This document shows, piece after piece, positions 10,021 to 44,717 of a DNA stretch of 64,000 nucleotides. The first letter of the stretch is position 1. Every line of letters begins with the position of its first letter. The notes beneath the pieces were generated by a model. The model saw only the letters and a list, made by a program, of their open reading frames with translations. It was not told the origin of the DNA and did no database searches. This DNA is from Okamejei kenojei. Lineage: Eukaryota. The DNA lies in contig CM069160.1 in assembly GCA_035221665.1 (NCBI GenBank), positions 8,432,001-8,496,000 of the forward strand, written 5' to 3'. Made by a program: the position numbers and the translations under genes.

Positions 10021-11686
10021 ACCCATTGCATAATAGAAAATAGTATTTTGACATTCATTTAATATATTTGTATTAAATATATTATACAATATATGATAAA
10101 TTTTACAGCAAAAACAGGTGATCTTAAAAAGACAACAGGACTCGCTAGAATTTAGAAGATTGAGGGGGGGATCTTATAGAAACTTACAAATTCTTAAAGG
10201 GTTGGACAGGCTAGATGCAGGAAGATTGTTCCCAATGTTGGTGAGGTCCAGAACAAGGGGTCACAGTTTAAGGATAAGGGGGAATTCCTTTAGGACCGAG
10301 ATGAGGAAAACATTTTTCACACAGAGAGTGGTGAGTCTCTGGAATTCTCTGCCACAGAGGTAGTTGAGGCCAGTTCATTGGCTATATTTAAGAGGGAGTT
10401 AGATGTGGTCCTTGTTGCTAAAGGGATCAGGGGGTATGGAGAGAAAGCAGGTCCAGGATACTGAGTTGAATGATCAGCCATGATCATATTGAATGGCGGT
10501 GCAGGCTCGAAGGGCCAAATGGCCTACTCCTGCACCTATTTTCTGTTTCTATGACACAGACCCTGGTGAGTTTAAAGGGAGTGAGGCCAACATACCCCGG
10601 CATTTTAAAGGATGAGTATAACTGGGCTCCAGTGTGTGAGAGGGAGGGTGGGAGTCAGCTTCTGCCTCATGTGGACTACCAGGATTTCCAAATAATTGGT
10701 TAGTGGACAATCGGTATTTGCCTACATTGTGGAACTGATAAAAAGCATTAATCACAAAAGCTGGTGTAACTCAGCTGGTCAGGCAGCGTCTCTGGGGGAA
10801 AGGAATAGCTGACGCTTTGGGTTCAGACCCTTCTTGAGACCAAGAGTCAGGAGGGAGGGAAACTTAGAGATATGAAAAGTAAAAGTGATATCTCAGATCA
10901 AAAGGCCTGGACAGAGTGATTGTGGCGAGGATGATTCAAGTAGTGGAAGATTCTAGGACCAGAGGGCACAGCCGCAGAATAAAAGGACGTGCCATTAGAA
11001 TGGAGATGAAGAGGAGTTTCTTGATTCTGGTGAATCTGTAGAATCCATTACCACGGGTGTCTGTGGAGGCTAGGTTATTGGATATTTTTAAAGCGGAGAT
11101 TGATAGGTTCTTGATTAGCAAGAGCGTCAAAGGTTACAGGGGGAAGAAAGGAGAATGGGATTGAGAGGGGAAAAAAAAAATAATGGAATGCTTTGAATGT
11201 ATGGCAGAGCAGACTTGATGGGCTCAATGGCCTAATTCTGGTCCCAATGACATGATCTTGTGAAAAGCTCAGGCTTGGCACAAAGCTTGCAGTCCACAGG
11301 GCAGCAGTGGTAACTGGTCTTCTGGGGATATCTATCTACAACATCCATGGATGCTGCGTGACCTGCTGAGCGGTTCCCGTTTTTATTTCGGAGTGCTCTC
11401 TGTGTGGAGTTTGCACGTTCTCACTGGGACTGTGTGCGTTTTCTCAGGGTGCTCCGGTTTCCTCCCACACTCCAAAGGAGTGCGGGCTTGTAGGTTAATT
11501 GGCTTCAGTCAAATTTATAAATTGCCCGTAGCGTGTAGGATCGTGCTAGTATGCAGGGTGATCGCTGGTCAGTGCAGACTCAGTGGGCTGAGGGGTCAGT
11601 TTCCACACTGTATCTCCAAAGTCTAAAGAATCATCCATTCCAATGAGAGGGCACAAGTACACTCGAGTAGGATCCATGATTGGGGA

Positions 11687-11794
11687 TAGACACAAAATGC
11701 TGGAGTAAATCAGCGGGACAGGCAGCATCTCTGGTGAGAAGGAATGGGTGACGTTTCGGGTCGAGACCCTTATTCAGACGGGGCAGTCAGACTT
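11687..11794 (-). mobile_element. Short Penelope-derived insertion with 12-bp TSD inside the last class I exon
   Basis: CATGATTGGGGA flanks both sides (11675-11686 and 11795-11806). The interior matches the abundant gtctgaagaagggtctcgacccgaaacgtcacc...gagttactccagcattttgtgtcta repeat that follows GIY-YIG fragments elsewhere in the window. Confidence 0.8.
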
Positions 11795-11895
11795 CATGAT
11801 TGGGGAGTCTGACTGGGGAAGCATTTTCTCTTCCTCGTTCCCGTCAACTCCTCCTGCTGTTACATCCTTCGGCAAAGACTCACTGCTGGTGGAAC
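11774..11895 (-). CDS. MHC class I exon 7, terminal cytoplasmic exon ([40 protein letters not shown])
   Basis: Acceptor tttctatcttAG, phase 1, open to TGA at 11776-11774. The last six residues and the stop come from a repeat insertion. An internal GTGAGT could be an alternative donor. Confidence 0.68.
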
Positions 11896-14800
11896 CTAAG
11901 ATAGAAAGTAACAAGGTGAGCGGAAATTCCAGGCAAGATTTGTGATAGGACAGCGCAGTGGGTGGACCTGCTGCCGCACAGCGACAGCGACCCAGGTTCG
12001 CTCCTGACCCCGGGTGCTGCTGGCGTGGAGTTTGCACGTTCTCCCTGTGACCACGTGGGTTTCCTCCGGCTGCCCTGGTTTCCTCCCACATCCCGAAGGC
12101 GTGTAGGTTTACTGGCCCTAGTGTCAGGTCGTGGGTGCAAAAGTGGGGTGACGTAGAACTAGCGTAAACGCGTGCACGATGGTTGGTGTGGACCCGGTGG
12201 GCTGAAGGGCCAGTTTCCATGCTGGATCCCAAAACTAAACACCATCCGACGTCCTTCTCTCTCCCCACCACCACATGCCCAACCCTCCTCACATAAGTCA
12301 AGTCAGGTCAAGTCACATTTATTTATATAGCACATTTAAAAAAAACTCTCGTTGACCAAAGTGCTTTACATTTGTTATAAGAGTAGTATACACAAGCAGG
12401 CTACGTACATATATACATATAGCCCTCGCTCAGAGGACGTCAGGGAGAACAGATACGTTTTTAGACTGGATTTAAAGAAGTCGATGGAGGGGGCAGTTCT
12501 AATGGGGAGGGGGATGCTGCTCCACAGTCTAGGAGCTGCGACCGCAAAGGCGCGATCGCCCCTGAGTTAATGCCTGGACCGCGGGACATTCAGCAACCCC
12601 AAAGTCGGCCGACCTGAGGTGGTGTAGTGGGTGAGAAGACTTTTAATGTAGGTGGGTGCAAGCCCACTGAGGGTTTGTAGACAAAGAGGAGGCTCTTGAA
12701 AATTAATTCGGAACCGCACAGGGAGCCAGTGGAGAGAGGCCAGGATCGGGGCGATGTGGTCCCTTTTTCGGGTGCCCGTCAGGAGTCTCGCTGCAGCATT
12801 TTGGACCAGTTGCAGGCGGGACGGGGAAGATTGGCTGATGCCACTGTAGAGGGAGTTAATCCAGGCGGGAGGAGATAAATGTATGGATGATCTTTCCGGG
12901 GGGGGGGGTGGGGGGGGTGACTGCCTAGAACAAACTGCCAAGGTGGTTGAAGCAGATAGGAAAGTGCCATTTCAAAGACTTTTGGATAGGTATATGGATA
13001 CGATGGGAATAGAGGGATATAACCATATAATAACCATATAACAATTACAGCACGGAAACAGGCCCTCTCGGCCCTTCCAGTCCGTGCCGACCATTTGTTT
13101 TCCCCTAGTCCCATCTACCTGCACTCAGACCATACCCCTCCATTCCCTTCACGTCCATATACCTATCCACTTTATTCTTAAATGTTAAAATCGATGCCGC
13201 CTCCACCACTTCTGCTGGAAGCTCATTCCACACAGCCACCACCCTCTGAGTAAAGAAGTTCCCCCTCACGTTACCCCGAAACCTCTGTCCCTTAATTCTC
13301 ATGTCATGCCCTCTTGTTTGAATCTTCCCTACCCTCAATGGGAAAAACATATCCACGTCAACTCTGTCTATCCCTTTCATCATTTTAAAGACCTCAATCA
13401 AGTCCCCCCTTAACCTTCTGCGCTCCAAAGAATAAAGACCTAACTTGTTCAACCTTTCTCTGTAACATAGTTGCTGGAACCCTGGCAACATTCTAGTAAA
13501 TCTCCTCTGTACTCTCTCTATTTTGTTGACATCCTTCCTATAACTAGGCGACCAAAATTGTACACATGACGCCATCCCTTAACTGCCTGCCCATAATCCA
13601 TAATATGGATTATGGGCAGGCAGTTAAGGGATGGCGTCATGTTCGGCATAGACATTGTGGGCTGAAGGGCTCATTCATGTGCTGTACTGTTCTATGTCCT
13701 ATGTTCCATTATTGTGATCCATGCTGGGAGCTGAATTTAGCACCAAGTCCTGCCCTGGTCCAACAAGCCCGTACAATGTCACTTACCTGATGCGGTAGAC
13801 TTGGTCTCACTGGATCCTAAAAAAAAATGAAAAGGCACAAGTCAGCTGCTGAGAAATGTCAAAAACACTGTCATAGGCTCCGCATCAAATGGCTTCCACA
13901 AGAACAAGCACATCATATTCTGGGAGGGTAAACCACAGCTGGAGATATTGGAGAGAGGGAGCGCTGCACTGAAGCATAGTGAACAGAGGGAGTGCTTCAC
14001 TGTTGGAATGAGGGAGTTGATTGAGTGCTGCATTGTTGCACAGAGAACCGAGGGAGCGCTGCACGGCTGCACAGAGAACGGAGTGAACCGAGGAGTACCA
14101 TACAACTGCCGGACGAGTCTGTGTTCCACGTGTATAAGGAGGGAGAGAGGTGGCAGCCCCTGTTCCAATACCTACAGTGGCTTGCAAAAGTTTTCATACC
14201 CCTTGAACTTTTCCACATTTTGTCACGTTACAACCACAAACGTAAATGTATTTTATTGGGATTTTATGTGATAGACCAACACAAAGTGGCGCATAAATGT
14301 GAAGTGGAAGGAAAATGATACATGGTTTTCACTTTTTTTTTTACAAATAAAAAACTGAAAAGCGTGGCGTGCAAAAGTATTCAGCCCCCTTTACTCTGAT
14401 ACCCCTAAATAAAATCCAGTGCAACCAATTGCCTTCAGAAGTCACCTAATTAGTAAATAGTGTCCACTTGTGTGTAATAACCATATAACCATATAACAAT
14501 TACAGCACGGAAACAGGCCCTCTCGGCCTTTCCAGTCCGTGCCGACCATTTGTTTTCCCCTAGTCCCATCTACCTGCACTCAGACCATACCCCTCCATTT
14601 CCTTCACGTCCATATACCTATCCACTTTACTCTTAAATGTTAAAATCGATCCTGCCTCCACCACTTCTGCTGGAAGCTCATTCCACACAGCCACCACCCT
14701 CTGAGTAAAGAAGTTCCCCCTCACGTTACCCCGAAACTTCTGTCCCTTAATTCTAATCTCAGTATAAATACAGCTGTTCTGTTAAGGCCTCAGACGTTTG

Positions 14801-17800
14801 TTAGAGAACATTAGTGAACAAACAGCATCATAAAGCCCAAGGAACACACCAGACAGGTCAGGGATAAAGTTGTGGAGAAGTTTAAAGCAGGGTTAGGTTA
14901 TAAAAAAAAATCCCAAGCTTTGAACATCTCACGGAGCACTGTTCAATCCATCATCCGAAAATGGAAAGAGTATGGCACAACTGCAAACCTACCAAGACAT
15001 GGCCGTCCACCTAAACTGACAGGCCGGGCAAGGAGAGCATTGATCAGAGAAGCAGCCAAGAGGCCCATGGTAACTCTGGAGGAACTGCAGAGATCCACAG
15101 CTCAGGTGGGAGAATCTGTCCACAGGACAACTATTAGTCGTGCACTCCACAAATTGGGCCTTTATGGAAGAGTGGCAAGAAGAAAGCCATTGTTGAAACA
15201 AAGCCATAAGAAGTCCCGTTTGCAGTTTGCCACAAGCCATGTGGGGGACACTGCAAACATGTGGAGGAAGGTGCTCTGGTCTGATGAGACCAAAATTGAA
15301 GTTTTTGGCCTAAATGCAAAATGCTATGTGTGGTGGAAAACTAACACTGCACATCACCCTGAACACACCATCCCCACTGTGAAACATGGTGGTGGCAGCA
15401 TCATGCTGTGGGGATGGTTTTCTTCAGCAGGGACAGGGAAGCTGGTCAGAGTTTGGTGGGAAGATGGATGGAGCCAAATACAGGGCAATCTTGGAAGAAA
15501 ACCTGTTAGAGTCTGCAAAAGACTTGAGACTGGGGCGGAGGTTCACCTTCCAGCAGGACAACGACCCTAAACATACAGCCAGATCTATAATGGAAAGGTT
15601 TAGATCAAAGCATATTCATGTGTTAGAATGGCCCAGTCAAAGACCAGACCTAAATCCAATTGAGAATCTCTGGCAAGACTTGAAAATTGCTGTTCACAGA
15701 CACTCTCCATCCAATCTGACTGAGCTTGAGCAATTTTGCAAAGAAGAATGGGCAAAAATTTCAGTCTCTAGATGTGCAAAGCTGGTAGAGACATACCCCA
15801 AAAGACTTGCAGCTGTAATTGCAGCGAAAGGTGGTTCTACAAAGTATTGACTCAGGGGGGCAGAATACTTTTGCAGCCACACTTTTCAGTTTTTTATTTG
15901 TAATAAAATTTGGAAACCATGTATCATTTTCCTTCCACTTCACAATTATGCACCACTTTGTGTTGGTCTATCACATAAAATCCCAATAAAATACATTTAT
16001 GTTTGTGGTTGTAACGTGACAAAATGTGGAAAAGTTCAAGGGATAGAAAACTTTTGCAAGCCACTGTGAAGCAGCTGCTCCTTGCCTTCTGGCTGCACTT
16101 CACACCCACCATCCTCATCTCTGGACACCCTGTGCACAGGTGAGAGGGTAGGGCCGAGGATGTCCTGGTTGGGTTGCTCCTGGGCCTGGCCAAGCTGGGC
16201 ATCCAAGAGTCAAGGCGTCAGGCGGAAGAGGGCTCTGCGCCTGGGTGGTTTTAGAAAGGGACTACGCACTGTCCACGAACGCCCTGGGGAATTTCCTGGC
16301 TTGCTGGGCACCGTGGGGGCATCCTAAATATGGCTGGTGATATTGTTGTTTCAGAATGTATTTGACATTTAAGAATATTTGTTTAGATAATTGGGTGATT
16401 TGTTGGTTTGTTTGGTCTTGCTTTGTATTGTATATTTTATTCTTGCAATCATTGATTAAATTTGTTACAAAAAAAAAAAGAGCACTTGACTGTGGGCATT
16501 CTAGCCCTCTACACCAGGGATCTGGGGCAGAGGGTACTGCCTGCATCGAGGAGTCACATGCAACCTGTTTCCATCCCGGTTCACAGACTTGCCTGCCGCC
16601 TGCTCCAATATCTAAAGGGGCTGCTTCTTGCCTTCTGGTGGCACCTCTCGCCCACCATCCTCGTCTTTGGACGCCCTGTGCATAGGGGAGGAGGAGGAGC
16701 CGAAGATGTTCTGGTTGGACATCTCCCGTGCCTGGCCAAGCTGACGATCTGCGAGTCACAGCGCCAGGCGGAAGAGGGCTGCCCGCCCCTTTTTCGGGGT
16801 TACGTCCATGCCCGGGTGGTACTGGAGAGGGACTGCGCACGGTGCATGGGCACCCTGGGGGATTTCCAGGACCGCTGGGCATCGCGGGGCGGGGGGGGGA
16901 TGAATGCATCCTTGACAAGGTTTGTAATACAATCATTTAATTTTCAGTATATTGAAGAATATTTGTTTTACTTTGTGCTGTGATGTTGGGTTTGTTGTTA
17001 TCGTTTTGTATTGTACATATTATTCTTGTAAATAATTGATTACAATTATTTTTTGGCGTAACAAAAAAAGCTCCATTTGCTTGCTCTGTGCCTCTTTGAT
17101 GGAGTATTGCTCATTTTCAATGCTCGTCTTCATTGCGTGTTTGGGGCTCAGTATATTGCAACAAAAAGAATCTTAACAGTCTGTGGCAGCACGGTGGTGC
17201 AGCGGGTAGAGCTGCTGTCTCACAGTGCCAGAGACCCCGGGTTCGATCCTGACCACGGGTGCAGTCTGTGTGTGCAGAGTTTGCACATTCTCCCTTTGAC
17301 CGCGTGGGTTTGATCTGCGTGCTCCGGTTTCCTCCCCCTTCCCAAAGATGTGCGGGTCTGTGGGTTAATAGTCCCCCCCCCCCCCCTCCCCAGTGTGAAG
17401 GGAGTAGATGAGAAACGGGATAACATAGAACTAGTGTGAACCAGTGATCGATGGTCAGCGTGGACCGAAAGGCCTGTTTCATTGGTGTATGTCTAAACTA
17501 AACCAAGTGCTTGAGGTTAGCAAATGCGAGCGGCTTGTCCCTGACTGTCGCATGTGAAACAGATCGTGCAATGTGGACTTACCTTTGCCAAAACAGCAGT
17601 TGTTTTTCACCACTCCTGAACCCTTCTTCCACAAGATGAAAACAACCCACAGTGTGCACAGTAACAGCAGGAAAGCCGGGACCGCTAGCCATATAAGAGC
17701 TCGGCCACCCTGGTCTAATTAAACAAGAAGTCATTGTAATATCAGCGGACGGGAACGATCAGTCAGCGCATAGTGCACCCAACCCTTACCCAGCGTCCCT

Positions 17801-20800
17801 TACCCAGAGGTGGCACAGTGGCGCAACTGGTAGAGTTGCCGCCTCACAGCACCAGAGACCCTGGTTCAATCCCGACCTCAGGACAAAGCCGAGCAAGTGA
17901 TGGGTGGATACAGGTGAAATGTGGTAGTGGGTTTGATTGGCGGATGGGTGGGCAAAGGACCACAGGGCGCAGTGAGCAGAGCTGCTGCCTCACGCCACCA
18001 GAGGCCCGGGTTCGATCCCGACCCCTGGCGCTGTCTGTGTGTGGAGTTGCACATTCTCCACGTGACCGCGTGGGTTTCCGCCGGTGCTCGGCTTTCCTCC
18101 CACATCCCAAGAAAGACGTGCGGGTTTGTAGGTTAATTGGCCCTCTGCAAATTGACCCTGGTATGTAGCGAGTGAATGAGAATACGAGATAACATAGAAC
18201 TATTGTCAACAGGTGAGCAGATGGTCAGCATGAATTCGTTGGGCCGAAGGGTCTGTTTCCGTGCTGTATCTCTACAGTAAACTAAATCCCACCCTCCTGC
18301 CCTCTCTCTGGATACACAATTAGCTTGATGGTAGGAAGCAGCTGAATATGGTGCAAGGTTGGCTTGTTTGGACTTGAGCCCAATGGTATGCGTCAGGGAT
18401 CGGTGCTGAGCCCTTTTCCCGAGTTTGATCTCTATTAACGATTTGGATGAAAATGTAGAGATATAATGGTGGAGTAACTCAGCGGGACAGACAGCATCTC
18501 TGGATAGAAGGAATAGGTGATGTTTCGGGTCGAGTCTGAAGAAGGGTTTCGACCCGAAACATCACACATTCCTTCTATCCCGAGATGCTCCCTGTCCAGC
18601 TGAGTTACTCAAGCATTTTGTGTCTATCTTCAGTTTAAACCAGCATCTGTAGTTCCTTCCTACACATTGGATGAGAATGTACGAGCCATGGCTAGTAAGT
18701 TTGCAGATGACACTAAAGTAGTTGGTATTCTAGGGTGGGAAGATGAATAGAGTCAGAGTCTTATAACATGGAAACAGGCCCATCAGCCCAATTTCCCAAT
18801 GCAGACCAACCCGCCCCATCACTCTAGCCCCACCTGCCTGCATTTGGCCCATATCCCTCTAAACCTGCCCTATCAATGTGCCTCTCTAAATGTTTCTTAA
18901 ACTTTGTGTTAGTGCCTGCCTCAACTACCTCCACCAGCAGCTCGTTCCATATGCCAACCACCCTTTGTGTAAAAAAAGTTGCCCCTCAGTTTTTTTCTAT
19001 TGCATTTTTAAAAATAATCTTTTGGATGGCGCAACATAACATAACCTTAGAAATTAAATGGTTTAGAACTGGGTTACGGATGGGCAAAAATATGAGATAG
19101 GTAGATCTCTCCTAATCTCTCTTTTCTTTTTACTTTTTCCTTTTCTTTCAATCTTTTAACTGCTCACCTCTGTCCTTTATTTTTTTTTGTTTTCTGTTTC
19201 TACTCGCTTGTCTATCTATTCTGACACTCTTTATTTCTTTTTTCTCTCACTGTTCGTTTATTATTGAACCAAAAGTATGAAGTTGTACAAGAATGATAAT
19301 ATGTATTTATGTATTAGGTTCTTAAGTACCAGACTACTGTACTTACTTCTAACAAAACTAAACAAACAAAAAAAAAAAAAATAATAATAATCTTTTGGTT
19401 ATCAAGAATTACAGTGCGATCTTAATCAGCTGGGCAGGTGGGCCGAGGAATGGCAAATGGAGTTTAATTCAGACAAGTCCGAGGACTTGCATTTTGAGGA
19501 GTCAAACAAGGGCAGCACTTTCACAGGTTAACAGTATGACCCCGAGGAGTGTGGTGGAGCACAGGGATCTAGGAGAAGGGATATACAGTTCCCTGAAAGT
19601 GGCATCAGAGGAACTGCAAGTGCTGATTTAAACCAAAGATAGACACAAAAAGCTGGAGTGACTCAGCGGGACAGGCAGCATCTCTAGAGAGAAGGAATGG
19701 GTGACGTTCATACCACGGGTATGAATTTTGATTTCTCTAACTTCAAGTAACCCCGGCATTCCCTCTGTCTCCATCCCTCCCCCACCCAAGTTGCACCAGC
19801 TTCTCGTTTTCACCCAACAAAGAGCTAACAATGGCCTGTTTCCTTTATGATTGTTACTTTTTTGCATATCTTTTGCTCATTTGTTCTATATCTCTCTACG
19901 TCATTGCCTATATCCCTCATTTCCCTTTCAAGTGACTCGTCTGAAGAAGGGACTAGACCCAAAAGTACACCCATTCCTTCTCTCCAGAGATGCTGCCTGT
20001 CCCGCTGAGTTACTCCAGGTTTTTGTGTATATCAGAGGTAGTCATGATGGTGAAGAAGGCTTTTGACTTTAATCTGTAAGGGCCTTTACTATGGAGGAAC
20101 TGCACATGCTGGTTTACAAAGAAAGAACTGTAGATTCTGGTTTACAAAAAAAAAGACACAAAGTATTGGATAACTGAATGGGTCAGGTAGCATCTCCGGA
20201 GAACAAGGAAAGGCGATGTTTTGGGTTGGGTCCCTTCGTCGGACTAGAAGACGGTTATGGTTGGGATCCATTCTCAGACTGAAAAAGAGCCCCAATCCGA
20301 AACGTCGCCTATCCATGTTCTCCAGAGATGCTGCCTGACCCGCTGTGTTACTCCAAAACTTAATGTGAAAACCAAAGAGCTGCAGATGCTGGTTTATACC
20401 AAAAATAGACACAACGTGCTGGACTAACTCAGGAGAAAAAGAATGGGTGACGTTGCGGGTCGGGCTACTTCAGTGTGGAAATGGGTCCCGACCCAAAATG
20501 TCACCTATCCATGTTCTCCGGAGATGCTGCCTGACCAACTGAGTTGCTTTAGCACTTTGCATCTTTCATTGAGTATGGAGGTTGGGACGTGTTGCTACAG
20601 TTGTACAAGTTGTTCTTCATCCATCTCTTACCCCAGTCAACAGTCATTCCTTCGGGCCTGCTGCTGTGCCACACGCGGCAGACGTGCTCCCGTCTCTCTG
20701 CAGGCTCCATCAGCAGAGAAAGCTTCATCTGGTAGGTGCCATCGTGGTTGGGTAGAACGCCAGAGTTTCTGTTCGCGGGGACAGGTTGCCCCTTGCGGAA

Positions 20801-23800
20801 CCAACTCATGTTGATGGCCTGCGGGAAAAAGCCAGTCGCCAGGCAATGGAGAGCGAGTTTCTGGCCATCGGGAGACCTCCCGGAGTAGACCCTCACATCT
20901 GGAACAGCTGAGAGAATAGAGAGAGAGAGAGAGACATGGAGATACAGGGAACCACAGACACTGGAATATTGAGTTAATATTGGAGAAGCCCGTTAGACTT
21001 TAGATATCCAGCGTGGTTACAGGCCCTTCCGCCCACTGAGTCCGCACCAACCAGCGATCAACACTAGCACTATCCTACACGCACTGGGGACAGTTTACAA
21101 TTTTTACCGAACCAATTAACCGATAAACCTGTACGTCTTTGGAGTGTGGGAGGACACTCGAGCACCTGGAGGAAACAGGAAGACGGTACCAAATGTATCC
21201 GTACATTCAGCACCCATAATCAGGATCAAACCTGGGTCTCTGGTGCTGTAATGGCCCTGTCCCACTTAGGAAACCTGAACGGAAACCTCGGGAGACTTTG
21301 CGCCCCACCCAAGGCTTCCGTGCGGTTCCTGGAGGTTTTTGTCAGTCTCCCTAATGGTCGAAAGTGGTTTCCATTTTAAAAATCGGTAATTTTTTTAGTC
21401 GAAGCCGGTTGCGATGCTAGTTGAAGGTGGTTGCCGGAGGACAAAAACCTCCGGGAACCGCACGGAAACCTTGGGTGGGGCGCAAAGTCTCCAGAGGTTT
21501 CCGTTCAGGTTTCCTAAGTGGGACAGGGGCATTAGGCAGCAACTCTACCGCTGTGCCACTGTGCTCGACAAACCCAGAGGGTCAGGCAGCATCTGTGGAG
21601 GACAATGGGCAGGAACACTCTCTGAACCACAATGCCCTCTGTCCATTCCCACCAGCGATGCTGCCTGTTGGAGCCATTAAGCTTGTCAGTATTATTATCA
21701 TCATGCCTGATATTTTTAGTTTTAGTTTGTAATCTGCCTGTACTTTTGTAGGTGGGATTTGATACATAGTTAGGGGTGTGTTGTTTTTGTTAGAGGCATC
21801 TGGCACAGACTCTCAGATTTGAAGTTTCAGTTTGGTGTCGGAGAATGAGGGGAAACAGTTTTCTGCCATGATCACACACATGTTACGAAACGACATACCT
21901 CTATAAGAAGCTTTTATGCGATTTAGATGATGTGAATGGAACAGCGATAAAGAGCAGAAAAGTTATGAGTTCTTTCTTTGTTTTGTATTACTTCAATAAA
22001 AAAGCAATTAATCAAGAAACGAGGTCTGGAAGATTAACCTTTGCTGTCTTATGTGTGTCGTGCGTGCGTTAGGCTGTACCTCAGAATCATCTCCGATAAT
22101 TAATGGCTATCGAAGTCGGACTTTGAGAACGTTGTAAAAAGTGCCATTGTACAGCCTAAACCACCGATGTTTGCTGCCTTACAGCGCCAGAGACCCGAGT
22201 TTGACCCCAACTACAGCAGAGATGCCAACCCTAAATTTAGTTCACAGTAACATTTAACCCATTTGTCCGTAACAAATGGGGTTAAATGCATTTCTCTCCG
22301 TACTCACCTGGGGTTGTTGCCGGCGGCTATGCGCCTGCGCACTGGTGCAGATCAGCGGGCTGCTGGCGGGCGGGTGCGGCACATGCGCACTTGGCAAGGT
22401 TGCCGGCGGGTCTGCGCCTGCGCACTGGGTGGGGGTGGGGGGGAGGCCCGGTGATGGGGCTGCCGCAAGAAAGTGCCGCTGATCGCGCGGGCCGGCGCCG
22501 CCCGGGCTCTGGGCCGGGCGTGGCGTGGCTCGAAATGGCGCCAGGCCCGGCAACCCTCCCCCACTGCGCATGCGCGGCCACTGGGGCCCGGCAACCCTCC
22601 CCCACTGCGCACGCGCGGCCACTGGGGCCCGGCAAAGTGCCGCTGATCGCGCGGGCTGGCAAACCGGGGACACATGGCGCCGGTGTTCACCACGGGAGGA
22701 ACACCGGCGCGGCGGTGTTCCGTAACAGCATGTTTGGCTGCCGGAACACCGTAAAAAGTTTATTTCGCCGGGATAAAATACGGCGAATCCGGGACACTTG
22801 GCATCTCTGCTACAGGCGCTGTACGTATGGAGTTTGTACGTTCTCCCCGTAACCTGCGTGAGTTTCCCCCAAGAGCTCCAGTTTCCTCCCACACTCCAAA
22901 GATGAACAGGTTTGTAGGTCAATTGGCTTGGTAAAATAGTATATTGTCCCGCTGGTCGGCACGGACTCAGTGGACCGAAGTGGCCCATTTCCTTGCTGTA
23001 TCTCCAATACTAGCCTAAAAACTGTGGAAGATAGTCATGGCCAGGGTCTCGAGTGCACAACCTGTGGAGGTCAACAGCGCAACAGATTGAGAGCTCCTGA
23101 GACCCTGGTTTGAACCTGACCCCATTGCTGCCTGCATGGAGTTTACAAATTCTCCCTGTGAGTCCATGGGTTGCCACCAGGTACTCCGGTTTCTTCCCAT
23201 ATCCTAAAATTAAGTGGCCAAATAGTCTCAAGTGTTAAGATGAGTGGTGGAATCTGGAGGAACAAGATGGGAATATGGGATTGGTGTAGAACATAGGATA
23301 GTACAGCATGGAAACAGGCCCTTTGGCCCGCTCTGTCTGTGCTGATCATCATGCCAATTTTAACTAATAACATCTGCCTGCACAGGGTTTGAATCCCTCC
23401 ATTCCTCTGTTCATTGTTGTTCGTGTGCCTGTCTAAATTTATTTTAAACATTGCTATCATGTTTATCTGGCAGCACATTCTTTGGACCAATCAGCTGTCT
23501 TGCAAATCTCCTTTTTGCTGACACCTCCTAATCCAGGCATCATTCTGGTAAACCTCTCCCGTAACCTGCGCAAAGCTCCCACTGCGGCACCTTCTCGCGG
23601 CCGAGCCACTTTGGTCACGAACCGTCGTTCGTCGAGCTCGAGCTCTTACGTGAACGCTGGTGATCGGCGCTGATCTGGGTGGTCAGCTGACAGGGTGCAA
23701 CAGACGATGGAGCCAGTCTTCCCTTGGCAGTGAACGCGTTAACACACTTTGCACTAATATTACACAGAGTTTAAATATTAAACTGATTGTTTATACAACA

Positions 23801-30535: not shown

Positions 30536-33500
30536 GAGACTTTTAAAGTCAGGACCCTTCATCAGTCTTTGAAATTTACAAACTGGAAAAAGGATTCTGA
30601 TTTTCTACTCTATCTAAGCCCCTCATAATTTTATATTCTTCCATCACATCTTCCCTCAACCACCAGCGCTCCAGAGAAAACAGTCCAATTTTGTCCAACC
30701 TCTGCTTATAGCTAATACCCCTAATCCAGACAACATTCTGCACCCTCTGCAAAGCCTCCACATCCTTCCTGCAATGGGGCGACGAGAACAGCACACCGTA
30801 CTCTAAAGGCGGCATAACTAAAGTTTTACAAAGCTGCGTCATGACTTCCTGACTCTTATGCCCAATGCCCTGACTGATGAAGGCTAAGCACACATTACAA
30901 CTCAGCGAGCTAGCGTTAGGGCAGAGGGGTTCCATCACCCAGTGTGTGTGGGGGTGGGGCAGTGGTTCCCATACCATGGGGGAGGCAGCGGGAGGGTGTG
31001 GAGTCACTCATGAAGGCAGTTTGGGGTTCGACACGAAACCCAAAGTGTTGGAGCAACTCAATAGATCAGGCAGCATCTGTGGAGGGAATGGATCACCAAC
31101 GTTTTGGGTAAGGACCCTCCCTCATAAGGGTCTACACGCCAAGCGGCAAGGGGGGTAGATAATGCAGGTCCACACAGCAAGTGTGGCCTTTGGTCAACCA
31201 GAAATGGGTGTGACTTCCCATCCTGGTGACCAAACCCAAGGGTGATAGAGGAGGTAAGACAAATGGTGGAGTAACTCAGTGGGACAGTCTGCATCTCTGG
31301 AGAGAAGGATTGGGTGACGTTTCGGGTCAAGACCCTTCTTCAGACTGATAGAGGTGGTGGCGGGACAAGAGGGGGGTAGGATTGGCGGGCGGAGGGGCAG
31401 GCGACGGCTGGCACAGCCTGACCTACCTTTGCGAGATAGCGCGGAGTCTCCGTACTTGAGGTATTTCTCCAACCATTCCACGCAGATCGTGTCGGTGTAA
31501 TGCTTCTTGTAGAGGTTGTTGGCTGTGTCCCTGTTCCACTTGTCCTTCGTGCTCAAGGCCAAGGGCGAGGCGGTGACCCAGATGGACCGCTCGAAGTCAA
31601 AGCTGATCAGGTCCTGGCCGTTGAAGGCGTACTGGCGCACCCCGCTCACCGTCCCGTTGTCCGAGATGCTGCAGCCCGACGTGTACTGCAGGTAGTTCAG
31701 CTCTAGACATGGAGAGAACGTCAAAAGCCGTCCGAAACTCACACGCATCCTCTACATCCACCAACCCAAGGGTGGCATATGGATACAACAAGATGGATAT
31801 TACCCACCATTACCTGCCCATTACTGTCCCAATTCAGCACGTAACTCAACATCCCGTTACACTCCCGATAGATGTAATAAAACTTTTGGTGACACCATAT
31901 ATTAGTTTTGTTTATTATTATTGTCAAGTCATAGACTCATACAGCATGGAAACAGGCCATTTGGCCCAACTTCCCACACCGACCAATATTCCCATCTGCA
32001 CTAGCCCCACCTGCCTGCGTTTGGTCCATATCCCTCTCAACCTGTCCTATCCATGTGTCCGTCTCATTGCTTCTTAAATGTTGCAATCGTCCCGACATCA
32101 ATTACCTCCTCTAGCAGCTGATCCCATATACCCACCACCCTTTGAGTGAAAAAGTTACCCCTCAGATTCCCATTGAATCTTCCCCCCTTCAGCTTAAACC
32201 TATGTCGTCTGGTTCTCGATTCCCCTGCTCTGAGCAAGAGACTCCGTGAATCTACCCGATCTATTCCTCTCATGATTTTATACACCTCAAGAGTACAGAG
32301 GTGTATTAAAAAGCTTTTCCCTGCATGCTAAAAGGCAATACATGATTACAATCAAGCTGCCCACAGTGTACAGATAAAGGGAATGATGTTTACTGCAAGA
32401 TAATGTCCAATTAAAGATAGTCCAAAGGTCTCCAATGAGATAGGTGGTGACTCAGGCCAGCTTTCTAGTTGGTGATAGAATGGCTCAATTGTCTCTAAAG
32501 AGCCTTTGAAGAAACTGTCCCTGAATCAGGAGGTTTACGTGTTCACACTCCCGTGCCTCTTGCCTAACGGGAAAGGGGAGAAGCAGGAGTGACTGGGGTG
32601 AGACACATCCTTCATTATGCTGGCATTCCTAGGATGGCTGATTTGGAGGGTTGTGTTCAGTTTTGGTTACCCTGCTCTAAGAAGGAAGTTAATAAACTGA
32701 GAAGAGAGCAGAGAAGGTTTACTTTCTCCCCGTGACCTGCGTGGGCTTTCTACTATATATTCCTGGGACGGCACGATTTCCATATGAAGAAAGACTGGAT
32801 AGACTTGGCTTGTACTCGCTGGAATTTAGAAGATTGAGGGGTGATCTCATAGAGACTTACAAAATTCTTAAGGGGTTCGACAGGCTAGATGCAGGAGGAT
32901 TGTTCCCGATGTTGGGGAAGTCCAGGACAAGGGGTCACAGTTTAAGGATAAGGGGGAAGTCTTTTAGGACCGAGATGAGAAAATCGTTTTTCACACAGAG
33001 AGTGGTGAATCTGTGGAATTCTCTGCCACAGAAGGTAGTTGAGGCCAGTCCGTTGGCCATATTTAAGAGGGAGCTGGATGTGGCCCTAGTGGCTGAAGGG
33101 ATCAGGGGGTATGGAGAGAAGGCAGGTACAGGATACCGAGTTGGATGATCAGCCATGATCATATCGAATGGCGGTGCAGGCTCGAAGGCCTGCTCCTGCA
33201 CCTAATTTCTATGTTTCTATGTTTCTATATGTTCGGTTTGCTCTCGCACCCCAAAGATGTAGAGGTTTATGGGTCAATTGGCGGTGCAGACTTGGTGGGC
33301 CGAAGGGCCTGTTTTCACGCTGTATCTCTAAACTAAACTGAAATGTCTGAGCAAATCATTGCCCATGACATGCAGTGTGAATCAAGCAGTGAGGATACAC
33401 GCACCCATCTTGCTGAGGTTAGCTCGCTGCATCATGATCTGGACATTGGCCATGTACAACTTGTGTCGATTGATCAATCTCTGGGTCTCCTTGTCCCAGT

Positions 33501-36500
33501 AGTCACTTCCCAGGGCTCTCTCCATCCAAGGCTGCCGTGCAATGTCCTCCTCGGATTTGCTGTCAAAGTAGGTTATCTGAACGCCATCCAAAACTCCGAT
33601 GTGCACAAACTCGGGAAGGTCCACACTCCCGACCATCGAGGTGTAGTAATACTGCAGTGAGTGAGTCTCTGTAAATCACAACACAACACAACCTCAGAAT
33701 GAGATAACATGGTGCCGGCCTTTCAGACACCTCCCCTCCTCTATCTCCTGCCCACCACCTCCCCAGTAAAATAACATGGAACATAGAACAGTACATTACA
33801 GGACAAAGGCCCTTGGACTCACAATGTTTGTGCCAAACATGACGCCAAGATTAGAAGATCTAATCTGCCGGTACATGGGGCATATCCCTCTATTATTTTC
33901 ACTTTGAATTGAATTGAATTAATTCAGTCTGAACGAAATTTCGCTCCCCTGCAGTCATACACATAATTTAAAAAATGATAGAAACACACAATAAACACCA
34001 ATTTAACATCCACCACAGTGAGTTCACCAAACACCTCCTCACTGTGATGGAAGGCAAAGTCTTAAAGTCTCTGTCTCTTCCCTCTTTGTTTCCCACTTAC
34101 AAGTACCTACCTAAAAGCCTCTTAAATGCCACTATCGTATCTGCCTCCACCACCTGTCAGTGCGTTCCTGGCACCTACCACCCTCGGGGTAAAAATCTCA
34201 CCCAGCACATCTTCATTGAACTTTCCCCCTCTCACCTTATAGCTATGCCCTCTAGTATTGGATATTTTTATTTATTTATTTATTTTTTTTCAAATATTTT
34301 TATTATAGAAACAAAATAATAACAAAGTACATTATTTTGCAATGACGAAAATACATGATATTAATGATATATTCGTACTGTTAATAATATTTGTATTATT
34401 ATTGATTATTAATTTTAAGATTATGTATTTTATATAATTGAGAATACATGGTACTAGTAATACATTCATAATATTAGTAATATACTCGTACTGTTGATAA
34501 TATTTGTATTGTCACTGATTTTGAAATGTAGGACCATATTTTATATAATTGAAAATACGTAATACTAGTAAAACCTTCATGATATTCATTATATTTTCAT
34601 ACTGTTAATAATATTTGTATTATCATTGATTTTAAAATTTAAAATTATATATTTTATATAATTGAAAATACATGATACTAATAATACTTTCATGAAATTA
34701 GTAATATTTATATTCGTACTGATATTAAAAATTTAAGATTATGTGTTTCTATACATTTTTCTAATTTTTTATAAAAGTATGAAAAAATAGAGAAAAAAGA
34801 GTGTGAAAAGTTTGATGGAGAATGGAGTATTAATCATTAATCCGTCCTTGGAGATGTATTCATGATTTATTATATATATTTCTTCATCCATTCAAATATT
34901 CAGGCCGATATGTTAACTCTAGGGGAAAAAAGGTTCTGTCTACCTACCCTGTCTATGCATCATGATTTCATCTACTTCTATCAAGCCTCCCTTCAACCTC
35001 TAATGTTTCAGAGAAAACAATCCAAGTTTATCCAACCTAATGGGCAGAGAGAGCTCAAGAAATGAATGCCTTCATCTGAATGGAGACACAAGGAACTGCA
35101 GATGCTGGAATCCTGAGCAAAACACAAAATGCTGGAGTAACTCAGTGGGTCCGGCAGTATCTGTGGAGGGCAGGCCGCGTTTCAGCTCAGGACCCTGTTT
35201 CGACTACATCTCCGTTGGAAGAAAATTATTAAAACAGAGAGGTGAAAGTGTACACTTATAGTCTCCACACTACAGGAAGAATGTGGCTACGGGGAAAACG
35301 TACACACAGACAGCACCCATAGTCAGGATTGAACCCAGGTCTCTGGCGCTGTAAGGCAGCTGCTCTACATCTGCGCCACCATGCTTGTAGGAATCTGAGG
35401 GGCAACTTGTTCATGCAGAAGGTGATGGCTATATGGAACAAGCTTCCAAAAGTGGTATTTGAGGCAGGTACTATAGTAGCAGGTACAACATTTAAAGACT
35501 TTTGGACAGGTGCACGGATAGGAACGGTTCAGAGGGATATTGGCCAACCGCAGGAAGCTAGGAATAGTGAAGATGGTCGCCTTGGGCAAGTTGGGCCAAA
35601 GATCCTTTTTCCATGCAGTATGACACCGAGTAATTCCAACATTTTCTAATTTATTTTTCACATTGCAGACTGAGGGGTGATCTGTATAAAACCATGAGGG
35701 GAATAGACACGATGCATATACAGAGTTTTTTTAAGCGAGGGTAGGGAAATCAAATAGAAGAGGACATAGGTATAGAAGTGGATAGGTATATGGACGTGAA
35801 GGGAATGGAGGGGTATGGTCTGAGTGCAGGTAGACGGGACTAGGGGAAAACAAATGGTCGGCACGGACTGGAAGGGCCGAGAGGGCCTGTTTCCGTGCTG
35901 TAATTGTTATATGGTTATATGTTCAAGGTGAGAAGGGATAGATTTAATGCAGACCCGAGAGCTATCTTTTTCACTCAGAGGGTAGTAGCATATAGAACCA
36001 GCTGCCGGAGGAGGTAGTTGAGGCAGGCATGATAACTGCATTTAAAAGATACTTAGTCAGGTACGTGGAGAGTAAATTTTTAAAGGGATGTGGGCCAAAC
36101 GTGGGCAAATGGGACTAACTTAGATGGGCCTGCTTCGGGGAATGAAGGAGTTATGCCGAATGGTCTGTTTCATTGCTGTATGACTCCAGTAGAGATGTGA
36201 ACACAATAAACAGCATAGACAGGGTGGGTCATAGGGCCTGCTCTTGTACTCTATAAATCTATGATTATATCGTTCGCAAATTTATGTTGACCTATTTATT
36301 TATCACGCATTGACCTGGCTCTCCACTTTTCCATACCCCCGCCCCCATTATAATGTCATTCTCGACCCGAAATTGCACTTGTCCATGTTCCCCAGAGTTA
36401 TTCCACATCTTCCCATCTTTCTCCCCCCCCCCCCCCCCCCATCTGCCTTCCGCAAAGACCGCTCCCTCCGCAACTCCCTTGTCAATTCTTCCCTTCCCCC

Positions 36501-37618
36501 CCCCCCCCCGCTCCACCCCTTCCCCGGGCACTTTCCCTTGCAACCGCAAGAGATGCTACACTTGTCCCTTCACCTCACCCCTACACTCCTTTCAGGGACC
36601 CAAGCAGTCCTTCCAGGTCCGACAGACCAGGTTCACCTGCACCTCCTCCAACATCATCTACTGCATCCGCTGCTCCAGATGCCAGATGATCTATATCGGT
36701 GAGACCAAGCGGAGGCTTGGCGATCGTTTCGCCGAACACCTCCGCTCGGTCCGCAATAACCAACCCGACCTCCCGGTGGCTCAGCACTTCAACTCCCCCT
36801 CCCATTCCATATCCGACCTCTCGGTCCTGGGCCTCCTCCACGGCCAGAGTGAGCAACACCGCAAGTTGGAGGAACATTTTTTTTAATTTCAAAATATACT
36901 TTATTCAAATGATAAATATATACAATACATTAACCTTGCGGAAAATCCATCCGACATTTTCGGAGGCTGTACAATAGATCAATACAGGTTAGACATTTCT
37001 TTCCCCCAAATTTCCACAAATCAGTCCCCCACTCGTGCCACAATGGCGTGGGATACCTTCCCTTATATTGCGGGGCGTCTCCACCATACCGTACCCCCCA
37101 TGTCCAGCAGCGGAAGGGCCTTAGACTGTGGCCCTCCCTGGAGGAACAGCCCCTCATATTCCGCTTGGGGAGTCTGCATCCTCTGGGCTTGAACATTGAA
37201 TTTTCTCAATTCTGTTAACCCTTGCTGTCTCCTCCCCTTCCCACCTCTCCCTCAGCCCTCGGGCTCCTCCTCCTCCTTTTTCCTTTCTTCTCCCCGCCCC
37301 CCCCCCCCCCCCCTCCTCCCATCAGGCTGAAGAGGGTTTCGGCCTGAAACGTTGCCTATCTCCCTCGCTCCATAGATGCTGCTGCACCCGCTGAGTTTCT
37401 CCAGCCTTTTGTGTACCCTCGATTTTCCAGCATCTGCAGTTCCTTCTTAACACTTATTCCTGCCTGACCCAGGCACCTGCCTGACCCGCAGAGTTATTCC
37501 AGCATTTTGCGTACATTAGTCCTTTATTCTCTCCAAAGGGAGGCTAGAGAAATGAACTCCACCTACCTGAACAGACCCAGGGAAGGCATAGACACAAGGT
37601 ACCGAGTAGCAGCAACAT
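11774..37618 (-). CDS. MHC class I heavy chain gene (7 coding exons, 383 aa); probably non-classical UDA-like lineage of cartilaginous fish
   Basis: Seven minus-strand exons with GT-AG phase-1 junctions join into one open frame of 52+264+276+276+132+30+122=1152 nt: signal peptide, alpha1, alpha2 (C101-C164), C1-set alpha3, TM and a two-exon cytoplasmic tail. No stops or frameshifts seen. Lineage call is an inference from the 8/9 anchor pattern. Confidence 0.93.
12295..12875 (-). mobile_element. L2 LINE 3' fragment
   Basis: [33 protein letters not shown] motif; (cttga)n tail at about 12296-12315. Confidence 0.85.
13017..13567 (-). mobile_element. CR1 3' end, (taaccata)n-tail subfamily
   Basis: Near-identical to 2073-2620. 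Confidence 0.9.
13787..13816 (-). CDS. MHC class I exon 6, cytoplasmic mini-exon ([10 protein letters not shown])
   Basis: Strong acceptor (ttttcattttttttAG) and donor CAG|GTAAGT around 30 nt, phase 1-1; Ser/Thr-rich like class I tail exons. Confidence 0.8.
14175..16066 (+). mobile_element. Tc1-family DNA transposon (DD34E, IR/DR-type TIRs of about 215 bp), defective copy 1
   Basis: TA|CAGTGGCTTGCAAAAG...CTTTTGCAAGCCACTG ends; transposase motifs [35 protein letters not shown]. Start codon mutated to ATA, frameshift near 15455, CR1 fragment inserted at about 14478-14753. Confidence 0.95.
16067..17070 (+). mobile_element. Two tandem Tx1/L1-like 3' fragments with A-tails
   Basis: Two similar LLLAFW.H..PTIL..G.PV units, each followed by a T-rich UTR and an A-run (about 16470-16480 and 17063-17069). 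Confidence 0.6.
17583..17714 (-). CDS. MHC class I exon 5, transmembrane ([44 protein letters not shown])
   Basis: Acceptor ttaattAG, donor AAG|GTAAGT, 132 nt, phase 1; about 23-aa hydrophobic stretch followed by KK stop-transfer. Confidence 0.9.
20632..20907 (-). CDS. MHC class I exon 4, alpha3 Ig C1-set domain (AVPDVRV...[10 protein letters not shown]...LPNHDGTYQ...HVCRVWHSS...VDW)
   Basis: Polypyrimidine (tc)n tract and cAG acceptor, donor G|GTAAGA, 276 nt; C1-set Cys pair, GFFP and LPNxDGTYQ motifs. Confidence 0.96.
21252..21531. mobile_element. PIF/Harbinger-type palindromic MITE inserted in a SINE
   Basis: CCCTGTCCCACTTAGGAAACCTGAACGGAAACCTC...GAGGTTTCCGTTCAGGTTTCCTAAGTGGGACAGGG, inverted arms of about 85 bp, flanked by TAA/TTA. 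Confidence 0.75.
22217..22809. mobile_element. GC-rich non-autonomous DNA transposon with 6-bp TSD (hAT-like), inserted in a SINE
   Basis: CTACAG|CAGAGATGCCAA...TTGGCATCTCTG|CTACAG; internal tandem duplication of about 42 bp. Confidence 0.8.
25150..29420 (+). mobile_element. Rex1/Babar-type non-LTR retrotransposon, apparently 5'-complete, interrupted by nested insertions
   Basis: Arg-rich N-terminus [24 protein letters not shown] motifs ITETWL and GGGLCIY, RT motifs [25 protein letters not shown] and KFADDT; several frameshifts. Confidence 0.85.
27704..28026. mobile_element. PIF/Harbinger-type MITE inserted in the Rex1 RT
   Basis: CCCTGTCCCAC...GTGGGACAGGG ends; it splits the FLTN|RPQ codons of the LINE. 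Confidence 0.75.
30197..30481 (+). mobile_element. Probable solo LTR (285 bp)
   Basis: TGTGGCG...CGCTACA inverted termini, AATAAA at 30418-30423, embedded in a (TAT)n tract; TSD not clean. Confidence 0.6.
31427..31702 (-). CDS. MHC class I exon 3, alpha2 domain ([11 protein letters not shown]...STKDKWN...[17 protein letters not shown])
   Basis: Acceptor tctAG, donor AAG|GTAGGT, 276 nt. G100-C101, Q-Y-A-F-N-G-x-D, W133, T143-K-x-K146-W147, Y159, C164, W167, Y171. Confidence 0.96.
33405..33668 (-). CDS. MHC class I exon 2, alpha1 domain ([11 protein letters not shown]...DYWDKETQ...QRANLSKM)
   Basis: Acceptor tttacAG, donor G|GTGCGT, 264 nt. Motifs H3-S-L-x-Y7, PEFV..G..DG, PWM, Y59-W-D-x-E-T, R84 and the N86-L-S sequon. 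Confidence 0.96.
34265..34906 (-). mobile_element. 3'UTR and poly-A of the same L1 family, in class I intron 1
   Basis: Reverse complement matches 43120-43770 (ggcctgaatat..gaatggatgaagaaatatatat..tccaaggacggattaatga); T-run at the left end. Confidence 0.8.
36385..37455 (+). mobile_element. Penelope-like element 3' part (GIY-YIG endonuclease plus terminal repeat), interrupted by a Tx1-like fragment at about 36880-37140
   Basis: ORF 36353-36886: [34 protein letters not shown]; resumes EEQ.LIFRLG.L.P.GLN at about 37140, followed by a CTGAAGA...GAAACGT terminal segment. Confidence 0.88.
37567..37618 (-). CDS. MHC class I exon 1, leader peptide [17 protein letters not shown]
   Basis: ATG at 37618-37616, hydrophobic 17-aa signal peptide, phase-1 donor CAG|GTAGGT at 37566; lies about 170 bp downstream of the X/Y promoter boxes. 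Confidence 0.88.
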
Positions 37619-43949: not shown

Positions 43950-44717
43950 TGCGCCCTGTATCAGCGGTGTGGTGAAGGGTCTGGGAGAGGGTCTGGTCGG
44001 TTAGACTTCCAGGCAGAGTGAACGCGGTGCATTAAAGCCGCTTGCAGTCGTCCCCTGCTCATTTGCAACGTACTTTATTGAGGGGGCGGACAAAACATGT
44101 AAGAAGAAACTGCAGATACTGGTTTACACCAAAGATAGACACACATTGTAGGAGTAACTCAGCGGGCCAGGCAGTATCTCTGGAGAGAAGGAACAGGTGA
44201 CGTTTTTTGTCGAGACCCCTCATCAGGCTTTTTGTCTGATGAAGGGTCTCAACCCAGAGAGTTGTGAATTTGTGGAATTCCCTGCCACAGAGGGCAGTGG
44301 AGCCAAATCACTGGATGGTTTTAAGAGAGAGTTAGATAGAGCTCTAGGGGCTAGTGGAATCAAGGGATATGGGGAGAAGGCAGGTGTGGGTTATTGATTG
44401 GGGACGATCAGCCATGATCGCAATGAATGGCGGTGCTGGCTCGAAGGGCCGAATGGCCCCCTCCAGCACCTATTTTCTATGTTTCAATATGCCACCTAGT
44501 CTATGGTGGCTATTGCACAGAGGAGTGCAGGTGTGATACGATATGATGCGATGGCACTTATTGATCCCAGGAGGAAAATTGATCTGCTAACAGTCATAAA
44601 ACACAAGATACACGAAACATGAGATTAAAGTGACGAGTGTAAAGGTTTGGGGATGTGCACCGATTGGGAGGGGTTGGGAGTCAATCTACCGCATGACAGA
44701 AGGGGGAGAAGTTGTAC

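Follow-up and report, generated by a model that had tools for sequence, protein, structure and literature searches.

The last coding exon of a class I gene of the major histocompatibility complex (MHC) in the skate Okamejei kenojei most probably owes the end of its cytoplasmic tail and its stop codon to an inserted fragment of a Penelope-like element (PLE). The gene lies on the minus strand of a 64,000-nucleotide stretch of contig CM069160.1 (positions 8,432,001 to 8,496,000; below, the window, numbered from its first letter). The best explanation is that a PLE insertion supplied both the tail end and the stop, and that a substitution at G8 of the hammerhead-like core carried by the insert is neutral; a probability of about 0.8 is assigned to it. 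The case is one of a transposable element captured as coding sequence, with a known family and a known mechanism. An initial annotation of this DNA had proposed that a retroelement, inserted in sense orientation between direct repeats, had rewritten the tail of the class I protein. This proposal is supported by the target-site duplication, by the spliced exon 7 and by the RSDCPV ending found in Leucoraja erinacea.

Insertion, reading frame and stop codon

The 12-mer TCCCCAATCATG has exactly two occurrences in 64 kb (minus strand, 11795-11806 and 11675-11686; chance expectation 0.04), and the 108 bp between them (11687-11794) constitute the insert. The features of this region are as follows.

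11795-11806, minus strand: 5' copy of the target-site duplication, an exact 12-mer (TCCCCAATCATG) encoding S-P-I-M
11687-11794, minus strand: 108-bp insert, a 5'-truncated terminal PLE fragment of the short class lacking the optional tail; gene-sense orientation, 45 blastn matches in the window, 3' end at the commonest short family end
11774-11776, minus strand: stop codon UGA, equal to U4-G5-A6 of the hammerhead-like core; end of the open reading frame (ORF), covered by spliced contigs, the preceding GUC encoding the C-terminal Val
11675-11686, minus strand: 3' copy of the target-site duplication, the exact 12-mer

The insert contributes the last six residues, KSDCPV, and the stop, since the minus-strand frame terminates at TGA 11776-11774. 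The in-frame GUC-UGA of the sense insert ends the protein with Val, and the rest of the insert is 3' untranslated region (UTR). All three frames of the exonic copy reach a stop within eight codons. When the insert is removed, the frame reads SPIMDPTRVYLCPLIGMDDS... and stays open for 46 codons past SPIM before a TAG inside another abundant repeat. The bracketing direct repeat, the addition of KSDCPV with a stop formed by the UGA of the core, and the open read-through on removal of the insert had all been claimed in the initial annotation and were confirmed, its coordinates being correct throughout.

A repeat of the form ...GTGGGAGGAAAC...GTGCAAACTCCAC... (minus strand) is present in two copies of the same orientation on either side of exon 7, at 11400-11620 and 11990-12100. 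The downstream copy (11400-11620) is the source of the stop in the insert-free frame.

Target-site duplication and 5' truncation are features of PLEs, and both are seen here, the copy beginning just upstream of the core. The letters TC also follow the short 3' end in five of six other copies that share it. The element therefore probably ends ...CTATC (...GTGTCTATC), and the true duplication would then be 10-12 bp long, with 2 nt of microhomology.

The 5' junction is marked by an inverted repeat.

11784-11815, minus strand: perfect 10-nt inverted repeat, arms 11784-11793 and 11806-11815, 12 nt apart, surrounding the 5' duplication copy

This agrees with the 10-bp inverted duplication reported earlier for the junction. 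In the predicted mRNA fold the two arms pair into a hairpin of 10 bp that lies eight bases ahead of the stop and is preferred over the hammerhead. For most copies in the window the match to the insert begins only at its position 16, and for three copies at positions 5-9, so the first 4-15 nt of the insert (AAGTCTGACTGCCCC) would be partly or wholly junction filler, within which the flank recurs in inverted form. Template switching or fold-back during 5' joining is possible. The case for template switching is weakened by the sequence AGTCNGACT, which is itself palindromic and hence also gives an 8/9 direct match, and by the presence of ...CTGAC... just upstream of the core in the family.

Host gene and its transcripts

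The host is a non-classical MHC class I gene with seven exons on the minus strand, extending from the leader at ~37.6 kb to the last exon at 11.9 kb.

37568-37618, minus strand: leader exon, coding part (tblastn of residues 1-17 of the L. erinacea and Amblyraja radiata proteins)
~33391-33669, minus strand: alpha-1 exon (tblastn of elasmobranch class I proteins)
31425-31700, minus strand: alpha-2 exon (tblastn of elasmobranch class I proteins)
20618-20908, minus strand: alpha-3 exon, C1-set immunoglobulin (Ig) domain (tblastn of elasmobranch class I proteins)
17583-17715, minus strand: exon 5, connecting peptide, transmembrane segment and start of the tail (hydrophobic scan, splice sites, joint 17583/13816), ending ...CCFGK plus one base of the next codon
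13787-13816, minus strand: exon 6, 30 nt, cytoplasmic, SSETKSTAS, phase 1 (joints at both ends in four runs; splice sites)
11774-11895, minus strand: exon 7, the last exon, coding part (joint 13787/11895 in four runs; frame; 80-85% identity to skate homologues)
11382-11387, minus strand: first canonical AATAAA, 386 nt past the stop, candidate polyadenylation signal (from sequence)

The alpha-1 and alpha-2 exons are 59-92% identical, and the alpha-3 exon 45-80%, to elasmobranch class I proteins carrying PF00129 and PF07654. The closest named relative of the gene is 'nonclassical MHC class I antigen [Ginglymostoma cirratum]'. The exons were compared one by one; the alpha-3 query retrieved mostly multi-Ig proteins from the representative protein library and was useful only for the proteins P0009 and P0024. 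The exon layout is that of class I genes (alpha-1, alpha-2, alpha-3, then transmembrane and cytoplasmic exons), with spliced joints.

Contigs from four public runs (X1, X2, X3 and X19, belonging to two studies) were placed on 11640-17639. The joints 17583/13816 and 13787/11895 are present in all four runs, and both introns are GT..AG on the minus strand. Together the lengths of exons 5 to 7 (133 + 30 + 122 nt) are divisible by 3, and the frame of the initial annotation is kept. A contig of X1 (1283 nt) and one of X2 (1270 nt) span 11893 down to 11747 and 11753, respectively, passing the internal GTGAGT and the 5' copy of the duplication before running over the insertion junction and the stop. 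Splicing out at this GTGAGT had been named as an observation that could overturn the proposal; the two contigs pass straight through it. No contig without the insert is found among the joints listed for the four runs. The use of exon 7 and of its stop is confirmed in that spliced contigs skip the two GT..AG introns and cover both junction and stop, and transcription of the exon is indicated by these joints together with RefSeq and transcript-derived proteins, rather than by raw reads.

Against the window, the X1 and X2 contigs show 5 differences in 147 nt (11780, 11800, 11814, 11831 and 11846), and X19 comprises two forms, one of them almost identical to the window. In one transcript allele, A>G at 11800 turns I into V within the 5' copy of the duplication, which is expected of an old insertion. 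Position 11772, the G8 equivalent, is unchanged in the X1, X2 and X19 contigs; the U at this site is therefore older than the divergence of the transcript forms.

One of the two X19 forms has a 3-nt insertion (TCC, plus strand) at 11838, in the coding part of exon 7. It is an in-frame allele or paralogue length difference in the acidic stretch of the tail.

Repeat family and link to Penelope-like elements

The 45 matches to the 108-bp insert have scattered 5' ends, a pattern also known from other retroelements that use target priming. Assignment of this family to the terminal region of a PLE, the Penelope origin put forward in the initial annotation, is supported by GIY-YIG ORF ends located upstream of cores and by the division of the 3' ends into two classes.

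36314-36883, plus strand: fragment of a GIY-YIG endonuclease ORF, 190 aa, (I)IY...YIGET motif, Pfam PF01541; not part of the class I gene
ORF end 60575 and core 60815, 38870 and 39108, 41433 and 41675, 53744 and 53975, 37215 and 37327, same strand within each pair: recurring C-terminal peptide of the ORF followed by a core copy
60393-60844, plus strand: example of an element 3' end, with the ORF end at 60575, ~237 nt of untranslated repeat and a complete core at 60815-60844

The protein atlas search gave a sub-threshold GIY-YIG lead (score 0.89). An L. erinacea homologue of the ORF carries RVT_1 (89% identity over the matched part), and another relative carries PF01541. The C-terminal peptide of the ORF (last 35-60 residues) recurs seven times in the window, and in five of the seven cases a core copy stands 107-237 nt downstream of the ORF end on the same strand. 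No full-length PLE is present in the 64-kb window.

Two classes can be told apart among the family's 3' ends, 19 copies ending at reference positions 85-93 and 17 at 124-134, ~32 nt apart. The exonic copy ends at position 93, the commonest short end. An optional 30-40-bp tail between two internal reverse-transcription start sites was described as unique to PLEs by Frangieh et al. 2024 (PMC11167929). The two classes of skate ends match this optional tail.

The following course of events would best account for the exon. In an ancestor of two or more skate lineages, a PLE transcript would have been copied by reverse transcription into the final coding exon, with priming on a staggered nick giving the 10-12-bp duplication. 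Synthesis would have begun at the internal start site (...GTGTCTATC) that omits the optional ~32-nt tail and halted just past the minimal hammerhead core, so that only ~93 family-derived bases were inserted. A further 4-15 junction bases, including an inverted copy of the flank, could have been added during joining. The new end was fixed, is spliced into the mRNA and is kept, as RSDCPV, in L. erinacea.

Several other repeats were noted in the window. The PLE copy with the most ORF among those seen is located at 36314-37453 (plus strand), in class I intron 1, antisense to the gene and ~100-1,300 bp 3' of the leader exon; in it the GIY-YIG fragment is followed by an interruption, by a second occurrence of the ORF end (37138-37215) and by a terminal repeat with a core (37327-37453). 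At 18452-18666 a minus-strand and a plus-strand copy abut head to head at the core (18534), forming a long palindrome. Two further head-to-head cores, at 44199-44228 (minus) and 44234-44263 (plus), are 5 nt apart. Opposite-strand pairs of minimal hammerheads have been mentioned for other species (PMC4209133). In class I intron 6, two overlapping ORFs of 232 and 154 aa (14872-15850, plus strand) resemble, by eye, a frameshifted Tc1/mariner transposase.

Hammerhead-like core and the G8 position

The insert contains a motif resembling the minimal hammerheads of PLEs, which are devoid of the helix III of canonical hammerheads (PMC6155905).

11750-11779, minus strand: minimal hammerhead-like core, with the CUGA-A-U-A box, extra A, helix II GGGU/ACCC, GAAA, palindromic ACGU and C17
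11772, minus strand: G8-equivalent position, U here; in the 3' UTR, two bases past the stop

The core stretch GTCTGAATAAGGGTCTCGACCCGAAACGTC (11779-11750) has a single mismatch to the commonest 30-mer of the family, at 11772, where T replaces G8. The catalytic box C3-U4-G5-A6-N7-G8-A9 is thus interrupted in the exonic copy, which reads CUGAAUA. The family itself has the box, each position being kept in 82-95% of the 22 core copies in the window. The G12-A13-A14 box, A15.1, U16.1 and H17 at the cleavage site are present in the exonic copy (GAAA-CG-UC at 11757-11750), as are the extra A after A9, followed by G10.1-C11.1 closing a 4-bp helix II (GGGU/ACCC), and the palindromic 15.2-16.2 (A-C-G-U). 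The CG of this palindrome is kept in 12 of the 22 copies and is mostly CA in the rest. The copy at 63144-63173 has both G10.1>U and C11.1>G, by which a U-G pair is kept; no other of the 22 copies has a double change in helix II.

At G8 the copies have G in 18 cases, A in three and T only in the exonic copy, which bears out the earlier observation that the residue is mutated at 11772 while most other copies in the window have G (18/22). Changes in the core are common: 14 of the 21 other copies, none of which lies in a mapped class I exon, have them, and 7 of the 21 keep all 14 positions. The losses among these 21 affect G12 in eight copies (mostly CpG decay) and G8 in three. Over 93 nt the exonic copy departs from the majority letters at about three places, and three substitutions would strike one or more of the 14 core positions with a chance of 1-(79/93)^3, or ~0.39.

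Schistosoma mansoni provides the one element tested, of which a single copy showed no detectable in vitro self-cleavage and tandem dimers were weak (PMC4209133). The ribozyme of the Anolis element requires the element's own protein, and RNA-seq shows no ends at its cleavage site (PMC11167929). By analogy with these elements, self-cleavage would in any case not be expected of a minimal hammerhead that stands alone and is 5'-truncated. We infer that G8U is one of about three neutral substitutions, that is, ordinary decay, with no demonstrated role.

C-terminal tails of relatives

A 90%-identity cluster of 32 members includes two RefSeq isoforms of L. erinacea, transcript-derived proteins and one A. 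radiata protein (XP_032903621.1). The L. erinacea proteins XP_055521806/7 end ...KMLPKSDSPIMRSDCPV (SPIMRSDCPV); the 10-residue segment matching the 30-nt exon 6 is present in isoform X1 and absent from isoform X2. Twelve listed transcript-derived proteins of this cluster (355 aa) end RSDCPV, RSGCPV or RSDCPA. A protein of a second transcript cluster, which is devoid of alpha-3 (P0188), ends KSDCPV. Val closes the tail of the window gene and 15 of 16 listed tails, the remaining one ending in Ala. A protein search with the L. erinacea tail only returned just the two known skate clusters and no further species.

The ectodomain exons of the window gene are 77-92% identical to the proteins of these two clusters, and the window gene is thus either a paralogue or an orthologue from another skate. 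Under either relationship the insert-derived end is shared with at least one other skate species and is old; the RSDCPV ending of the L. erinacea proteins points to an old insertion event.

In P0188 (Logan transcript protein, 263 aa), alpha-2 is joined straight to the transmembrane exon (...SMLSRK/DQGGRVPIWL...), so that alpha-3 is skipped and the KSDCPV end is kept.

Outside the skates the tails are more varied. The sawfish (Pristis) orthologue ends ...EKDKMLV, and those of Heterodontus and Pristiophorus end ...LV. Some sharks end ...PLV, with or without an extension, and other sharks run on for 6-25 unrelated residues. Because the sawfish and shark ends differ or are extended by unrelated residues, the end of the class I tail is evolutionarily labile.

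Weighing of the explanations

Several points weigh against a PLE insertion with a former hammerhead as the source of the tail end. The PF01541 match of 36314-36883 (E 3.9e-4, 21.1 bits) is just under the cut-off of 22.6. A helix I of 4-5 bp is absent: only U2.1-A1.1 and G2.2-C1.2 pair, in the exonic and in the longer copies. Helix II is paired in 84% of cells, and its covariation of 0.094 was reached by 116 of 500 shuffles, which is not significant, the window copies mostly showing decay. No Rfam hammerhead was found at gathering score over the 64 kb, nor at E<=10 on the exonic copy or on the near-complete copy at 39108 (one core change), which means only that no curated model reached the threshold. 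As to the transcripts, all four runs are assembled contigs, two of them labelled 'probably DNA', with no RNA ends, strand or expression level. The X1 and X2 contigs stop inside the repeat (11747-11753), and the 3' UTR and poly(A) site are outside their coverage. Such contig ends are expected of an assembly once its 31-letter words are common to a family of very high copy number; summed depth exceeds 10^5 in the bin of the contig ends. Creation of a poly(A) signal (AAUAAG) by G8U was considered and dropped: the contig ends fit breaks at high-copy words and carry no A-runs.

The A. radiata protein is a further point on this side. It ends ...KSDSPIMV, one residue past SPIM, and this skate may lack the insert; the event would then be younger, or a short tail past SPIM ancestral. 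An ATG followed directly by GTC-TGA would yield 'MV-stop', and GTCTGA is found twice near the 5' end of the insert. The insert-free sequence (GAT CCT ...) would require several changes to give the same result. To judge from the protein end, it is likeliest that A. radiata carries the insert with a small indel. The initial annotation had held that insert-free orthologues ending near SPIM would refute it; this condition is partly touched by the SPIMV of A. radiata, and the RSDCPV of L. erinacea speaks for the insert.

Among the rival explanations, adaptive silencing is very improbable. It holds that the inserted hammerhead was active and cut the class I mRNA, and that G8U was selected to stop this. 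G8 is indeed catalytically important, its 2'-OH being the proposed general acid (PMC6155905), and G8C abolishes cleavage of the Anolis element (PMC11167929); moreover, G8U is the only change in the 30-nt core, and U8 is common to both transcript forms. An adaptive G8U is nevertheless unsupported because 14 of the 21 other copies are likewise disabled, the published single copy is inactive, helix I has only 2 bp and U8 is common to diverged contigs. The chance of ~0.39 and the preference of the predicted fold for the junction hairpin also stand against it, as do the weak tandem dimers of S. mansoni and the dependence of the Anolis ribozyme on the element's protein. The suggestion in the initial annotation that the motif was disabled on account of its position in an mRNA thus finds no support. 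It is also possible, but unlikely, that the family motif is no ribozyme and that CUGA...GAAA is kept as a terminal RNA recognised by the reverse transcriptase, the likeness to a hammerhead being historical. The missing Rfam match, the short helix I and the absence of significant covariation would fit this, and the copies neither begin nor end at the predicted cleavage site; in Anolis, ribozyme mutants were without effect on in vitro insertion and no RNA-seq ends occur at the cleavage site (PMC11167929). However, the commonest family form has the listed sequence features of PLE minimal hammerheads, namely the boxes, the extra base, G10.1-C11.1, the palindrome and U-H (PMC4209133).

Two other alternatives concern the protein. 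The ancestral protein could have ended earlier (...KMLV), the skates already reading through non-conserved sequence, so that the insert was just the first stop and its six residues are inconsequential. Pristis, Heterodontus and Pristiophorus end ...LV in alignment with skate ...KML, and other sharks add 6-25 unrelated residues. The insert-free frame enters another repeat before its stop, and the insert-derived residues vary across transcripts (K/R, D/G, V/A). On the other hand, L. erinacea and A. radiata both have PKSDSPIM and the window gene PQSDSPIM, which argues that this stretch is coding and conserved among skates, and the near-constant final Val described above also disagrees with an inconsequential end. 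This alternative is accordingly regarded as tentative and rather unlikely. Still more doubtful is the view that the insertion was kept because GUC-UGA is a ready-made Val-stop which restored a short Val-ended tail, the core piece being co-opted as a trafficking-competent C-terminus. It relies on the Val that also ends the sawfish and three of the shark orthologues and on analogy with mammalian MHC class I, where a C-terminal Val or Ala is a reported signal for export from the endoplasmic reticulum (ER) (PMC3741148, citing earlier work of the same group). If it were true, a piece of a retroelement ribozyme core would serve as an MHC trafficking C-terminus, and the insert could have been tolerated or favoured for its Val-ended tail. 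The PLE insertion with neutral G8U remains the preferred explanation.

Significance

The exon offers a clean, datable example of a transposable element turned into coding sequence in a cartilaginous-fish immune gene, with an exact duplication, an identified source family, transcription and sharing between skate species. The very abundant PLE-derived repeats of skates can terminate an ORF in any frame, which is useful to know in the annotation of elasmobranch genes. The window also contains internal evidence for the two-start-site tail signature, so far biochemically resolved only in a lizard element. A caution follows for exonic ribozyme copies: a disabled catalytic residue seems meaningful until it is set against the two-thirds of non-exonic copies that are disabled as well.

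Comparison with known systems

The skate motif shares with the PLE minimal hammerheads of Cervera & De la Pena 2014 (PMC4209133) the CUGANGA and GAAA boxes, the single additional base that separates A9 from G10.1, the pairing of G10.1 with C11.1 and, in place of a real helix III, a palindromic ACGU that would pair between two copies. Thousands of dispersed truncated copies and head-to-head copy pairs are also common to both. It differs in its helix I of 2 bp, found otherwise only in the Drosophila virilis variant (usually 4-5 bp), in its helix II of 4 bp with a tetraloop (6-8 bp in PLEs) and in the U at G8 of the exonic copy. In the skate family as in the Anolis PLE (PMC11167929), all copies end at the 3' side some tens of bases beyond the hammerhead; this end exists in two versions, ~32 nt apart in the skate, each in about half of the copies, and the 5' truncation varies. 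The start sites of the Anolis element are, however, 111-118 bp inside the ORF, whereas the skate post-core stretch is without a long ORF in the copies read (it stops at TAA). The abundant skate copies may derive from a non-autonomous or rearranged relative.

Rodent Clec2 genes have a discontinuous hammerhead in their 3' UTR (Martick et al. 2008, cited in PMC6155905), which likewise belongs to the mRNA of an immune membrane protein and whose motif begins at the stop or beside it. The likeness is confined to location: the ribozyme of Clec2 is a type III hammerhead that is complete, active and conserved as such, whereas the skate exon has just one minimal core of type I, which bears a disabling change and gives no sign of having been selected for ribozyme function. 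As in the mammalian class I ER-export signal (PMC3741148), the skate tail ends in Val (Ala in one variant), and the sawfish and three shark orthologues end in Val. Unlike in mammals, the skate Val codon is the GUC beside a CUGA box. In Xenopus, non-long terminal repeat (non-LTR) retrozymes were described in a preprint (Li, Clavereau & Pollet 2026, 10.64898/2026.07.22.740005), where exons hold few of the PLE-related hammerhead repeats (0.24-0.32%) and those that overlap an exon are found mostly in the last one, as in the skate gene. The Xenopus overlaps are mainly with the 3' UTR, whereas the skate insert straddles the end of the coding region and gives the stop and six codons.

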